64,000 bases of DNA, taken from assembly GCA_964252035.1 (NCBI GenBank), contig OZ176200.1, one strand, 5' to 3'. This DNA comes from Podarcis erhardii (taxonomy: Eukaryota). The translations under genes and the position numbers were made by a program. Positions 1,822-8,800 of the stretch are shown one piece after another. The notes beneath the pieces are model-generated. The model was not told the origin of the DNA, searched no databases, and saw only the letters and a program-made list of their open reading frames with translations. The first letter of the stretch is position 1. The number at the start of each line of letters is the position of its first letter.

Positions 1822-2016
1822 TATAAACTGAATCCTAAAATAATGTCCACCCTTTGATTCAAGGTATATTTTAAAATATATGAATGTTTTAATCATCTTG
1901 CAGCATTACGAAGTGTTGTCCTAACATGATAATTGATTGATAGTATCTGGTAGATACAAGATGAATTTTTCAAGAAAGCATTTTAGTAAAATGTAAATAA
2001 TTTTTTCCCCATACAG

Positions 2017-5000
2017 AGATTTCTAGCTCTATTATTGTGTCTTCTGAGGAAGAAAGAACTGAGAGTTACACCAGCGGCCTACAATTATGTGATAGAGATA
2101 AAACACTTGAACTCATGCCTGAAAATCCAGTTTATTCTAGCAGTTTAGAGGTGAAAAGGGAGAAGAGCAATGTCCCAACCTTCCTCAAGCATGTGTCAAA
2201 TGTTGAAATAAGTTTAGGAGATTTAGCTAGACTTTCTGTTGTAGTTACTGGGGATCCAAAACCACAGATACAATGGTATTTCAATAGTGTTAAGCTGACA
2301 TCATCTGCAGACTATAAGTTTGTGTTTGATGATGAAAACTATAGCCTCATTATTCTCTCCACAACATTTGACCATGAAGGGGAATATACTTGCATTGCTA
2401 GTAATATCCATGGAGAGACAGCCTGCTCTGCTTATCTGAAGGTCAATCCTAAGGGAGATGAAAGGGAACTGGAGGCAGAATTCACTGCAGAAAAGACAGG
2501 AAGTCCTCAACCTCCATATTTTGTTAGGAAGCTAGACCCTGTTCAGTGTGCACAAGGTGCTCCTGCTGTGTTTGAGTACAAAGTGGCTGGGGATCCACCT
2601 CCAGAGATTCAGTGGTTTAGGGGAAACAACCAGATTTTCTCCTGTGCACGATACACTATCATTCATAACCGAGATGGTTCTGGGTCACTAATGGTGAATA
2701 ACTGCCAGGGGGCTGATGGTGGCTTATACATCTGTAAGGGAATCAACCTCATAGGTGAAGCCTCTAGCAGTGCAGAACTTCTTGTTCTCTTAGACGTGCC
2801 TGGGGAGGCTCCATATAAGGAAAAGAAGAGTAAACAGAAAACACACACCAAGTCATATAAAGAAACTGTAAGTGACGAGGCTACTGTCTCACGGATATAT
2901 GCCGTTAAACTGCCTGGTGATGATAGGCATGATGGGCAGCATGTGATGTATACAATTGGAACTGAAGATAGGCATTCACTACATAGTGAAGAGGTAGATG
3001 TTTTGCAGGTGGCCTCCTACTCAACAGCTACTGTACAGCAGGAAGCCCTTCTGACCCAACAAGTAGCCTTGCTTGAGTCCCACAAAGTTGGAGAAATTGC
3101 AGATCCATCTTCTCAGGCCAATGAAAAGGTGGCTTCTTCAGCTTTTACCACATGTGAGGTGAAGGAGCACCCCGGTTTCCTAGAGCAACACTCTGAACCA
3201 ATTCAAAGCCCACCAATAGTCGAATTGCCGGGTTCCTGGTGCCACCAAGTTTCTGACATCTGTTTACCTGTTGTGGAGGAAATAAACCAAGAAGACAAAG
3301 AAAAGGGGCTGCAAACCAAGCTTCCAGAAATGGCCAGGCCAACGTCAGCTATCGAGCAAACATCTCAGTTTGCCTCCATTCTGTCTGAGGAGAAATATGT
3401 GGTAAGCCCCGGTGAGTCTGCTGTATTCTCAGTCCCAGGACCTGAGGAAGTTATTGAAACCAGTGAGCCTAAACATGCAGTGTGTGTTCCTAGAATTGAG
3501 GGCATCCAAGAATTGTCCAAGGAAAGTTCTTTGGCAGACCACACACACAAGTGGGAGAATGTCACACCTGCTAAAGAACGAGGCAGCTTTTTTCAGTCTG
3601 TTGTAGCAGCAGAACAATGCAAGATAAGTGAAGCTCATGCTGAGGCAATCGATTATGCTGATTCACCTGCAGAAGTTCGTCCAACCCAAGAATCATCCAA
3701 CTTATTGCATGTGGCTACGATTGCCTCTGAACAGATGTTCCCCAAAGAGTCCGCCTTTGATGCAACCATTGCAGAGCAGCAGAAGGGCTCGCTGGAACAG
3801 GACAGGCTTGTCCAAACAGCTCTGGTTGCTGAAGAAAAGCAGCAGCTCTCTGATGAGCACACTGAGGACCTTCCCAGGTTAGACTGCATGATGGTAGCAG
3901 AAATCCAAAGAGAGGGTGAAAAGCCACTGCATTTGCCTGTTGTATATGGACAAGGCTTGCTTCCTAGAGAAGAGCATTTTAGTTCTGAGGTGCCCCTGGA
4001 AGATGAGGCGCTGTCTAGGAAAAGCCCATGTTTGCTACACTGCTTAGTAACAGAAGAACAAGTTTCCACGTCTTGTGAAGATGCTAAGCAGTTTCCTCCT
4101 CTGGCAGAGGCAGTTAGCATTCAGGTCACCCAGGAGCCCATTTCTGTGTTGCACCTCCAAACGAGCCAAACTGAGCAAGTGTTGCCTAAGGAAGGCATCT
4201 TGGCTGTACAAGAACCCGAACCCCAAAATGCTTTGCAGAAAGCTGAAATAATGCTCAAACGTGCTGTGGCGTCTGAGGAAAAAAACCAGATAGCTGCCGA
4301 GGCCCTAGAGGCTTTTCAGAGTGGCATTGCTGGAGAATACCCTGTGGCTATAGCAGAGCCTCAGCTTCGTAAGTGTCTGACCACTGTGGCTGAGGAGATG
4401 CTTCTGCCCAAAGAGGAAATCCTCCCCAAAGCAGGAAAAGAGCAGAAAGCTACCCTGAGGAAGGAAGACTTTCAAACAGTGATGCAGGTATCTGATGTGA
4501 CTGAAGAGAGGGTCTTGGAAGTAGGACGTGCTGAGCCATTTGAGGCTGTTCAGGCCATGAGTTGTGAGGTGGTGTCTGAGCCCAGGTTGCCTTCAGAATC
4601 CACCTGTGTTGAGGAGCAAGGTGTTCCGATAGAGAGCATCGGTCTCTTGGAAGCCACAGAGCAAGAATTTGCAGCCCGCATCCAAGAAGGTCAGTCAGTC
4701 AGGCTCCCATTGTTATTGGAGGAAAAACAGCCATTAAAGGAGGAGCACTTGGACAAGATCGCAAGGCCAGATGCTGAGAATGTAAAGGCCCAAAAGCAAC
4801 TGGGGCTGCTTATGGATGTGCCTGAAACATGGGAAAACAAAGTGCTTCAGAAAGAAGAAGAACTTGCAGCTGAGACTCCAGTATGTTGTAGCTTAGATAT
4901 GAAGGCTCAGATCAGAAGGGCCCTGAAAGTAGCTCTGACAAATGAACAGCACTTATTTCCATTGGATGCTTTCGGTGATATTGAGAGCGTTCAATTAAAG

Positions 5001-5880
5001 ACTGTAACAGTGATCAAAGAACCTCAACATGCAACATGCACTTGCCTTATAATCTTGGAAAGTTCCAATACTGCAGAAATAACTCTCTCTCTAGATGGAG
5101 TATATTCTCAGACAGCTGATTTCAAAAGCGAATTGCAAGCTGCTGTTCACTCCATTATTTATGACGAGAAACATGTTCTGACAGCAGAGGAACCCAGTGC
5201 CATAGCAGAACCTAAACACCACAAGTTGCTTACTTCTTGTTCACCTTCCAAACTAATGCAGTCTGCTACTGTAACTGAGACACCTGTTCAGCAACAATCT
5301 GTCAGTAATATTATTGGTTCACCTGAGCTACATCATGCTTACCTGAGTACTGAATCAGAAATACAGGAGGAGCAACTTGTGTCTATTCAAGAAGTCCAAA
5401 CTATTGCTCTCAGTGAGCACATTAAAGATGTAGGTACAACCACACTCACCCTTGATATTCCTGTAGCAGCAGCCCCAGTTGAGAGGTTAATAGATGCTCT
5501 AAAAGTGAAAGAGAGAAAGGAAGAACTTTTTGAGGAAAATGAAGAGGAGGCGCATGTAGTTAAGGCTAGCAAACAAGAAGACAGTCTAGGGAGCAGGGGT
5601 TGTCCCATCATGCGCCAAAGTTTTATAGACACTGTTGTTGAAGAAGGTGACAGCGTAAGTCTTACCTCCATTATAGAAAATGTTAAAGTGGTGAATTGGT
5701 ATTTTGGGGATAAGCTGGTATCTTCAGGAAATGAGTTCAAGTGCTTGCAAGACCATGACACATACACACTAGTAATCAACCAAGCATTCAAGGAAGTGCA
5801 TCAAGGAGAGTACACCTGTGAGGCTCTGAATGAAGGTGGAAAAACAACAGCAACAGCGAAACTCACAGTTGTAAAAAGAG
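2017..5880 (+). CDS. TTN: Titin N2B exon (Ig I24, I25, N2B unique sequence, I26; eq. human exon 49)
   Basis: Acceptor ttttttccccatacag|2017, donor AAGAG|gttgga at 5881; 3864 nt, phase 1-1. Two N-terminal Ig domains ([13 protein letters not shown]..., [13 protein letters not shown]...), a long acidic unique region, then Ig ...[11 protein letters not shown]. Confidence 0.95.
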
Positions 5881-8800
5881 GTTGGAATATGGGGATAAAA
5901 TATTGCTTTCCTATTTTCACTCATTTGCTAACTGAATAGAACACACATATATATATTTGTATCTCTAGTAGCATTTTGGATACAGATATAAGAAGTATAT
6001 AAACTTCAGCTGTGCACCACCAAACTAATCACAGATCCTCCACTTTTTGTTTCCTCTTTAGAACTTTTATTTCTTTAAATATATTTCTTATTCACACCTT
6101 TTATTTGCATTTTGCACTTTTTGGTACTGAAACAAAATTAAATTTTGTTTCATGAATGATGATTGTTAAATAAACTATTTGTAATGTCAGATTTTTAAAA
6201 AAAGAGTGCATGTCTTAGGAGCACTTTCATCCCCATATCCACAGAGCAACTTGGTTCACTTTTCCTTTTCATTGCTACAATAAAGATGCAATCCTGAACA
6301 CGCTGACTAGGGAGGAAGTCCCACTGAGCACTGAGCAGATGTGTATCTGAAGAAGTGTGCATGCACACGAAAGCTCATACCTAGAACTAACTCAGTTGGT
6401 CTTTAAGGTGCTACTGGAAGGAATTTTTTTATTTTGTTTTGACCACTGAGCACAGTGAGACTTGCTTCTGAGTAGACGTGCCAAGAGATTGCACAGCACG
6501 TTGTAGAAGTCATTGCACCATTTTAGCATAATGTCACACATTTCATGTTGAAAATGTTCTGGTACAACCTGGTATAATTTCATATATCATGTTGTTTGCA
6601 TGCCTTTAGTAGTAAGTAGCACATCAGAGTATCTTCAGAGTTCCATTATGCACTGCAATGTATGTAGCCCTCTGGTAGACTGAGCACTGCTTTCGGTTTG
6701 CTTTCACCTCTGACAACCATTTTTCTTTACAGCCACTTTCCTTGGATAGCTCATGAAACCACACATCTCATTTCTGTTGGTCACTTTATTAACAGTGTTT
6801 TGGAATGTACACTTATAAGCACCATACATGCTATTAGTATTACAATATCCACATGAACGTGGATGGTTGTAACCACATTATTCTTTGACTTTAAACTTCA
6901 GTTGGACCCATACTGAGGAGAAGGCTGGAATCCCAAGAAGTCGCTGTGAACCACCTTGCCAAGTTCACCTGCGAGATCGAGATGGCGCCAGACGTACGGT
7001 TTCAATGGTACAGAGCCGGTCGGGAAATCTATGATGGCGACAAGTATACCATACACACCGCTAATTATACATCCACTCTTCAAATCCCGAGACCGCAAGT
7101 AGTTGACTGTGGCGAATACAGCTGCAAAGCTTCCAATAAGTATGGCAGCGTAAGCAGCAAAGCAACCTTAACGGTAACTGGTAAGTGTGAGACATGAACC
7201 CTGTGCTGCTTCCTTGTTAGGTAACTGAATGTGTTCACCATTAGTATGTGGTAAAATGCATCTAGGGCCAATAAGAGACTAAGGATTTCCATTTCTGTGC
7301 ATATAGAAATAGAAGAAAATACCAGGTATTTGGCCCCCAGGTTCAACGTACATATCCAGGAGCAAAAAATATATTTTCATCGGAAGCTGAGTCAAAGAAC
7401 AGATTTGTAATTATTGTATATTGTTTCCGAACTCTTTTAAGCGTGGAGGAAAACTTACAAATAATAAAGGGAATACTCTAGTTCTTTTCAGATGTGCACC
7501 ATTTGGTACAAGCATACACACTACAAGCACCTCTCTCTAGTGATGGAAGAACTGCAGTTGGTGAAGGAGATTGTAGGCAAGAACTTCCACACTTAAAGCA
7601 TTTCACACTGGGGTCGGGAGGAGAGAAGAATGCAGCAATGGCATGGATTGTGCCCAGAGGCATTTGAAATGTTTTTTGATTCTGTCATATTCACCTATAA
7701 ACATTTGCTCTTAAATGTCTTAAGCTTCTCAAAAAGATTATAGTATTAACTGAGTCGTCTGATCATGATCTTGCTGATTTTATTTTATTTACTCTTTGAG
7801 ATTTATTTTATTTTGATTTTATTTACTCTTTGAGATCCATGCTTACAGACGTAGTGGGAGCCATCTTGAAATGAATAAAGGATACATAATGACATCGCTC
7901 TTTTAAAAAGATCTCCCTAGGCCTTTTTATTACTATAATAATTGCCTATACCTTTCATCTTACTGGAATCTGTATTACTGGTTAATTCATGACATGCACT
8001 TCAAATCCTCACATGTAAACCTAATTTCATGACTAAATAACTCTTGCTAGATGGCTTTTAAAACTGCTCTTTTAGATAACAAATAACTCTTGCTAGATGG
8101 CTTTTAGAACTGCTAGATCATCCTAATGATTTACTGGATGTATTGAGTCTTGGGAATCTTTACTGCACATTATTTCTAGGCAATTTAATGCGTGTATATG
8201 GAGACAGCGTTTCTGTCTCCTTTCTTTGGTGCTGGGGTGTGGGGGAAAGGTTGCTGTATTGGCCAAGTCCATGTCAACTTTCCCCCCTTTCTTTTGCAGA
8301 AGCGTTTCCTCCAACCTTTCTAACCAGACCCGAATCTATTACTACTTTTGTGGGTAAGAGTGCCAGGTTCCTCTGCACAGTGGCAGGCACCCCCGTAATC
8401 GACACAGTGTGGCAGAAAGATGGTGCCGCAATTTCTTCCACAGAACATTGCAAGATTTCAGCTTCTGAGAATAAGCACAGTTTAGAGATTCCACGCCTCA
8501 CCGTAAATGACAGGGGGGTATATACCTGCAAAGCCTCAAACAAATTTGGGGCAGACATCTGCCAGGCAGAAATAGCTGTCATTGATAAACCACGATTCGT
8601 CAAGGAACTGCAGTCTGTTCAGTCTGCAGTCAATAAGAAGATCCATCTTGAATGCCAAGTGGATGAAGACAGGAAAGTCACAGTATCCTGGAGCAAGGAT
8701 GGAACCCGAATACCTCCAGGCAAAGATTACAAGATTTGCTTTGAAGACAAGATAGCATCACTTGATATCCCTCTGTCTAAACTTAAAGATTCGGGAACAT

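Follow-up and report, generated by a model that had tools for sequence, protein, structure and literature searches.

The unique sequence of the titin N2B element (N2B-us) has for thirty years been treated in models as a worm-like chain without features, a 'unique sequence', and is the site of cardiomyopathy-linked variants, stiffness-tuning phosphorylation and an FHL/MAPK/PP5 signalling complex. The question raised by the locus described here is whether this stretch is, on the contrary, a tandem repeat. The window is a stretch of 64,000 nucleotides of DNA from Podarcis erhardii (GenBank assembly GCA_964252035.1, contig OZ176200.1); positions 2017–5880 on its plus strand are probably a squamate titin N2B exon with the layout Ig–Ig–unique sequence–Ig. 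An earlier, sequence-only reading of the window had proposed a repeat of 74 residues within the unique sequence (2787–5603; the 939 residues that separate Ig domains 2 and 3). Our analysis confirms this repeat.

A period of 74 residues

The motif A starts by which the repeat had been recognized are all present, at 3375, 3597, 3819, 4041, 4263, 4491, 4707, 4929 and 5151; eight of the nine lie exactly on a 222-nucleotide grid counted from 3375, and the one at 4491 is off by 6 nucleotides. Printing the sequence on this grid places motifs B (E-P) and C (L-P-K-E) at unit positions 31–32 and 49–50, respectively, in the units for which they had been listed. BLOSUM62 autocorrelation of the unique sequence of the window gave z = 9.2 at a lag of 74 residues and z = 5.6 at a lag of 148, with neighbouring lags at background (z = 2.8 at lag 73; below 2.15, the lowest value listed, at lag 75). 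The highest z across 2000 shuffles was 4.8, and the expected autocorrelation peak over shuffled controls is thus present. In a weighted profile of 19 sequences (the window and 18 homologues) z rose to 14.7 for a lag of 74 and to 8.2 for one of 148; lags of 37 and of around 222 gave 6.4 and 5–6, respectively. Taking a tandem repeat as at least three adjacent similar units in a common register, seven units qualify by being mutually significant in hhalign.

The repeat is a property of the protein. Tandem Repeats Finder detected no DNA tandem repeat in 2000–6000, and the excess DNA identity at a lag of 222 nucleotides resides in codon position 2 (0.40) and not in position 3 (0.28), which indicates an old similarity that has been maintained at the protein level. 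The same two observations lead us to reject both a recent duplication and gene conversion. Between the units of the window the mean identity is 13% and the maximum 26%, compared with 7.6% expected by chance.

The nine units

Units were cut from the ortholog alignment on the 222-nucleotide grid of the sequence-only reading. In the following list the percentages are hhalign probabilities and z refers to an ungapped profile test against column permutations.

3375–5372 (+), array of nine units, u1–u9; 666 residues in the centre of the unique sequence
3375–3596 (+), u1; 74 residues; 90% to u2 and u7; z = 6.1 at offset 0
3597–3818 (+), u2; 89–97% to u1, u3, u4, u5 and u7; z = 8.6
3819–4040 (+), u3; 97% to u2 and u4; z = 9.7; boundary helix in the AlphaFold2 (AF2) model with the top predicted local distance difference test (pLDDT) score, 66–81
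4041–4262 (+), u4; 92–97% to u2, u3 and u5; z = 10.2
4263–4484 (+), u5; 88–92% to u2, u3 and u4; z = 8.0
4485–4706 (+), u6; weak match, z = 2.6, best offset +37; exactly one 74-residue slot
4707–4928 (+), u7; 84–92% to u1, u2 and u3, 80% to u8; z = 3.7
4929–5150 (+), u8; z = 4.4, a score reached by 0 of 2000 permutations, offset 0 being the best of 74; 80% to u7 over 72 columns
5151–5372 (+), u9; degenerate, second half prone to indels; z = 5.6 at offset 0

When the ortholog alignments of the units were compared with each other, u1–u5, u7 and u8 gave probabilities of 80–97% over 57–73 columns, always at offset 0. All nine units exceed the column permutations (z from 2.6 to 10), in seven of them none of the 74 sliding offsets scores better than that of the grid, and a hidden Markov model (HMM) built with one unit left out at a time agrees with the permutation test. 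The stretch 3375–5372 consists of nine in-register copies, of which seven are clear and u6 and u8 are weaker.

Unit u6 deserves separate mention. It is the least like the repeat consensus, with its best match shifted by half a unit (+37), and yet, compared across orthologues, shows the highest identity to the window (45% on average), including a near-invariant stretch L-L-E-A-x-E-Q-D/E-F-A (10 protein letters not shown). Judged from this conservation, u6 looks like a specialized site for a putative partner.

The grid slots flanking the array, starting at 2931, 3153 and 5373, showed no unit signal by hhalign, the leave-one-out HMM or the permutation test. Shifted by one residue (offset −1), the segment 3150–3371 scores above all permutations, and its Glu + Asp beat (see below) is in phase. 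It is covered by eight homologues only, most fishes being without 38 residues there; it may be a very degenerate tenth copy upstream of u1 in squamates.

An origin of the units from a degenerate Ig domain is rejected: hhalign of u3, u4, u8, the segment resembling the structural domain discussed below, and u3 + u4 against Ig1–Ig3 gave probabilities of at most 7%, with controls at 99.6% (Ig1–Ig3) and 97.7% (u3–u4). Neither the unit profile nor the complete unique sequence had a match in a PDB sequence search, and the ESM Atlas gave no lead on relatives of the units (scores of 0.69 or less).

The exon and its length constraint

The array sits within one long open reading frame (ORF), the parts of which are as follows.

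2001–5939 (+), single long open frame containing the exon
2017–5880 (+), probable titin N2B exon; polypyrimidine tract and AG acceptor before 2017, GT donor at 5881
2175–2444 (+), Ig domain 1 (I-set); Pfam PF07679, ORF residues 47–136
2514–2786 (+), Ig domain 2 (I-set); Pfam, ORF residues ∼160–250; without indels among homologues
2787–3374 (+), Us-N, the N-terminal non-repeat part of the unique sequence; indel-rich
5373–5603 (+), Us-C, the C-terminal non-repeat part of the unique sequence; Glu-rich and indel-rich, no unit signal
5604–5870 (+), Ig domain 3 (I-set); Pfam Ig match, best stretch Ig_2 PF13895, ORF residues 1190–1278

Across the exon Pfam gives Ig families only, with no family for the 939-residue unique sequence, so that two Ig domains, a long non-Ig insertion and a further Ig domain, the arrangement of the N2B element, lie in one open exon. 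The homologues, too, consist of one ORF each and are similar in length; those from Salvelinus, Sander, Scleropages, Rhinoraja and Leptodactylus carry the names titin-like or titin a-like, and the named titin homologues cover 72–100% of the query, mostly more than 90%. The closest named homologue is from the lizard Phrynosoma (64% identity), and the window falls within a squamate clade in a quick tree. Two antisense ORFs inside the exon, at 3653–4120 (−; 155 residues) and 5387–5791 (−; 134 residues), are probably by-products of the Glu-rich sense frame. Rfam at gathering thresholds returned no match in the whole window; at 6200–6520 no hammerhead family was found even at E ≤ 10, the sole match, to snoR118 (13 bits, E = 3.9), being at chance level.

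Indel events per 100 residues, counted relative to the window, separate the array from its surroundings.

Ig domains, 0–0.09
u1–u5, 0.19
u6, 0.10
u7–u8, 0.60
u9, 1.7
Us-N, 2.35
Us-C, 4.0
Ig1–Ig2 linker, 11.7

In indel density the array resembles the Ig domains and lies 4–40 times below the flanking unique sequence. Despite the few indels, identity in the array (22–38%) is below that in the Ig domains. The stretch 3759–4328 is exactly 190 residues long in 26 of 32 homologues, including those of skate and frog. Conservation among orthologues also rises and falls with the unit period (z = 8.2 for a lag of 74 residues, 6.0 for one of 148), and the most conserved unit positions are 5–6, 13, 32, 50–51 and 68–69, mostly Glu, together with 39, 48 and 73, which are Leu. 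The proposal that the period is under selection is thus supported by three lines that are independent of the motifs from which it was first read: the low indel density, the 74-residue period of conservation and the spacing of units found by HMM (see below). An Ig-like length constraint is unusual in a region that is predicted to be mostly non-globular and, if the array is indeed held in register, points to a spacing-sensitive ligand or to transient structure.

Distribution and age of the array

In 15 of the first 19 homologues, including teleosts at ∼32% identity, no lag scores higher than 74. A unit alignment of 58 sequences (alignment A2), which is essentially ungapped, served as the basis of a unit profile, and a search of 1.84 billion representative proteins with it returned 25 matches only. 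Those checked have an Ig–Ig–array–Ig layout or are fragments of one, all of N2B type; they include skate (Rhinoraja), Scleropages and frog (Leptodactylus). The unit starts defined by the HMM, which are independent of the multiple alignment, are spaced 74, 74, 74, 74, 75, 73 and 74 residues apart in nearly all matches, and the spacing stays within 74 ± 1 across skate, ray-finned fishes, frogs and lizards. In the quick tree there are a tetrapod clade and a ray-finned clade, and the skate lies outside the tetrapods. Because skate and bony vertebrates share the array, it predates the split between cartilaginous and bony vertebrates; judged from these sequences, the register of the modules has been held for more than 400 million years. 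Alignment A2 is a ready profile with which to annotate N2B exons in non-model vertebrates.

Five homologues (P0031, P0034, P0038, P0041 and P0042) form a separate, fast-evolving ray-finned clade in which the 74-residue spacing is kept. They may represent a second teleost titin paralogue, and so an independent lineage preserving the array.

A beat of 9.25 residues within the units

Within each unit acidic and hydrophobic residues alternate with a period of 9.25 residues, eight beats to the unit (74/8). In the periodogram of the ortholog profile the power at 9.25 residues is 28 for Glu + Asp, 25 for hydrophobic residues and 14 for conservation, compared with a 95% shuffle maximum of 7–8; Lys + Arg peaks at periods of 37 and 18.5 residues. 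The beat is also visible in most single sequences tested, with a power of 15.8 in the window, 15–17 in teleosts and 17.6 in Phrynosoma (shuffle maximum ∼11), and is weak in skate and in P0042. Folding the composition at 9.25 residues gives roughly hydrophobic-hydrophobic-x-K/P-E/D-E/D-x-K-x. The beat is in phase in u1–u7 and u9, with a sizeable amplitude in u1–u5 and u7 and a weaker one in u6 and u9; it is weakest in u8, the unit of the folded domain described below. The periodogram shows no such beat in Us-N, Us-C or the mammal-like sequences.

Short and mammal-like versions

Three homologues (P0019, P0048 and P0047) match the human N2B-us as printed in PMC11530556. They retain three full units, equivalent to u4, u7 and u8, together with fragments, and have lost the coherent 74-residue period. 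A second short clade (P0043 and P0044) has lost Us-N and u1–u3. The suggestion that shorter vertebrate versions differ by loss of units holds in part: Us-N, u1–u2 and parts of u3 and u9 are deleted in the mammal-like sequences, but the deletions do not end at unit borders, in these or in the other short homologues, and loss of whole units is rejected. On the reading favoured below, the mammal-like sequences are a secondarily shortened and de-phased form of it.

Predicted structure and the human N2B-us domain

For human N2B-us a 115-residue α/β domain has been predicted and then confirmed experimentally (Sun et al., Nat Commun 2024, PMC11530556), with a critical force of ∼5.5 pN and a melting temperature of ∼62 °C. 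It holds cryptic FHL2 sites; 24 LIM-binding pentapeptide sites are predicted overall, the LIM zinc fingers of FHL2 binding N2B-us peptides of ∼5 residues via antiparallel β-augmentation. The same paper observed a single unfolding step for human N2B-us, calls the remaining 457 residues unstructured and makes no mention of repeat, duplication or periodicity. Residues 581–695 of the mammal-like P0019, which by eye nearly match the human domain sequence printed there, align to the window with 41% identity at the following position, and the HMM unit that they contain is u8.

4878–5289 (+), equivalent of the 115-residue human structural domain, from position 58 of u7 to position 47 of u9

Sequence homology to the human domain is confined to u8 and its flanks. 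By this homology u8 makes up the core of the α/β domain, the sole folded domain known so far in the human N2B spring, and 4878–5289 is the orthologue of that domain. The premise of the sequence-only reading, that N2B-us is treated as an intrinsically disordered chain, is outdated: the folded human domain coincides with u8.

In an AF2 model covering the full length of the unique sequence (built from 20 sequences; mean pLDDT 37) helices recur at most unit boundaries and strands are predicted only in u8. These strands (4989–5018, 5028–5057 and 5070–5096) lie between two helices (4896–4940 and 5121–5183), a prediction of low confidence (pLDDT 50–60). Mapped onto this model, motif A falls in the boundary helix of the u8 domain, motif B (E-P) is the turn between β1 and β2, L-H-L is β2, and motif C (L-P-K-E) starts β3.

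It could be imagined that all nine modules fold marginally into small α/β domains of this kind, opening stepwise at a few piconewtons and exposing cryptic sites in a talin-like manner. The indel density, as low as in Ig domains, the shared unit positions of the conserved motifs and of the u8 turn and strands, and the alternating hydrophobic residues of L-H-L-Q-V conserved in several units would all agree with this. AF2 does not: a model of u3–u4 from 30 orthologues (pLDDT 56) has boundary helices (pLDDT 60–81) with coil between them and no u8-like fold, and the full-length model confines strands to u8. The 9.25-residue beat, strong in u1–u5 and u7, weak in u6 and weakest in u8, suggests that u8 is under different constraints. 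The single-step unfolding that Sun et al. recorded for the human protein also speaks against an array of folding modules, although the human sequence is without intact copies of the other units. We consider such a foldable array unlikely, if the most serious of the competing explanations.

Proposed function

The results above show an ancient array of nine modules that is constrained in length and position, has a hierarchical 9.25/74 period and includes the known folded domain as its eighth copy. The reading that we favour, and which we hold to be probable without being assured of it, is that this array serves both as a segmented entropic spring and as a series of evenly spaced docking sites, with FHL proteins as the best candidate ligands. 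The nine copies arose by tandem duplication before the cartilaginous and bony vertebrates separated. At most module boundaries (not u3/u4) a predicted helix of ∼15–40 residues would hold motif A, followed by ∼40 non-helical residues in which there are three short, conserved motifs of hydrophobic and acidic residues, E-P, L-H-L-Q-V and L-P-K-E. Modules other than u8 are predicted to be non-globular, and the array as a whole would act as a segmented entropic spring in which the evenly spaced short motifs dock multi-module ligands; the fixed geometry of such a ligand would explain the constraint on the length of the array. FHL proteins are proposed because the indel constraint needs a spacing-sensitive partner and because their mode of binding peptides has been published. 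CCDC141 was considered as an N2B ligand and rejected, as its published binding was placed in the A-band.

Several points weigh against this reading. We infer the docking function purely from the published FHL binding mode and the need for a spacing-sensitive partner, the 24 FHL2 sites predicted by Sun et al. being given in figures only. Human N2B-us binds FHL2 although mammal-like N2B-us is without a coherent period, so that binding in itself does not depend on exact spacing. The similarity of u6 and u8 to the consensus is weak; the leave-one-out HMM has a median of 4.9 bits for u8, whereas the 99th percentile of shuffles is 5.4. Confidence is low for the two AF2 models (mean pLDDT 37 and 56), the taxa of most homologues, which come from Logan assemblies, are deduced from the quick tree, and the literature search was confined to open-access papers.

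A more specific form of the docking proposal would make the array a rack tuned to FHL. Each module would present its eight 9.25-residue beats to as many zinc fingers, those of four LIM domains, or else four sites of 18.5 residues to one LIM domain each; up to nine FHL molecules could be loaded in register per non-mammalian N2B-us in a stretch-gated manner, and the spacing would be free of indels since the ligand reads several sites at once. This is speculative, and we would be somewhat surprised if it proved correct.

The repeat might instead be an evolutionary fossil, the residual similarity left by an ancient tandem duplication, with a period that has no present function. The very low identity between units (mean 13%), the failure to find a DNA-level repeat and the tolerance of out-of-phase deletions in mammal-like sequences are what a fossil would leave. 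Unconstrained decay, however, would have erased the sharp lag-74 peak; moreover, conservation falls on the same positions of every unit and the array is nearly free of indels from skate to squamates while its flanks are rich in them, which makes this explanation improbable.

The modules could also be helical rulers that match a partner with a period of its own, for example the thin filament or adjacent titin molecules; in α-helical form 37 residues would measure 5.5 nm and 74 residues 11 nm, which corresponds to the subunit repeat of actin and resembles the situation in nebulin modules. The sub-periods of 37 and 18.5 residues and the long helices predicted at most unit boundaries fit this picture; the coil predicted by AF2 for the rest of each unit and the dominant 9.25-residue beat, which is not an amphipathic-helix period, do not, and Yamasaki et al. 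(2001), as cited in a review (PMC8553726), report no direct actin binding by N2Bus3. We regard a ruler as highly improbable. That the lag-74 signal is a chance or compositional artefact of a Glu-rich, low-complexity region, for which one could cite the acidity of the region (18% Asp + Glu) and the low unit identity, has a negligible probability and is already refuted by the sharpness of a peak at exactly 74 that no shuffle approaches, by homologues at ∼30% identity that show the period independently and by full-length in-register hhalign matches.

Comparison with known systems

In the literature N2B-us is described as nonmodular or unstructured (a 2021 N2B/N2A review, the 1999 three-element-spring paper and PMC11530556). 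The 74-residue repeat seems to be new, as the sequence-only reading had supposed, and what was already known is the human folded domain: the open-access literature yielded no report of a repeat in N2B-us, an earlier mention in Greaser 2001 or Witt et al. 1998, reportedly the closest older surveys of repeats, being possible.

The nearest likeness within titin is to the PPAK/poly-E repeats of the PEVK region (26–28 residues), which are also cryptic tandem repeats in a supposedly disordered spring and in which acidic motifs are also prominent. The array is nevertheless not of PEVK type: Pro, Glu, Val and Lys together make up 34% of it (0.34), its period is 74 and not 26–28 residues, and it has a strict unit length, a 9.25-residue beat and a single exon, whereas the repeats of the PEVK region are distributed among many small exons.

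The Z-repeats of titin and the modules and super-repeats of nebulin share with the array short helical modules in tandem. Their spacing matches a ligand (α-actinin or actin), and the periods of nebulin are hierarchical. No sequence relation between them and the N2B units was detected, Pfam giving Ig families only in the exon, and the N2B modules are only partly helical.

A third comparison is with LIM binding by a tandem β-zipper, of which the LDB1 LID with LMO proteins is an example. In this mode, as modelled for FHL2 and N2B-us (PMC11530556), extended peptides present short, regularly spaced strands to successive zinc fingers. The array offers regularly spaced hydrophobic and acidic beats that are similar to pentapeptides; this is a resemblance only.

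The closest system is the human N2B-us domain itself (PMC11530556), with which 4878–5289 of the window shares the same predicted order of helix, three strands and helix. The human domain is isolated in an N2B-us of 572 residues, whereas here its equivalent is one slot of a nine-unit array in a non-mammalian N2B-us of ∼940 residues. If N2B-us is indeed an ancient nine-module array held in register, the ancestral N2B-us was modular and the 572-residue mammalian version is a decayed derivative of it, and the folded domain described in 2024 gains both an evolutionary origin and eight paralogues with which it can be compared.

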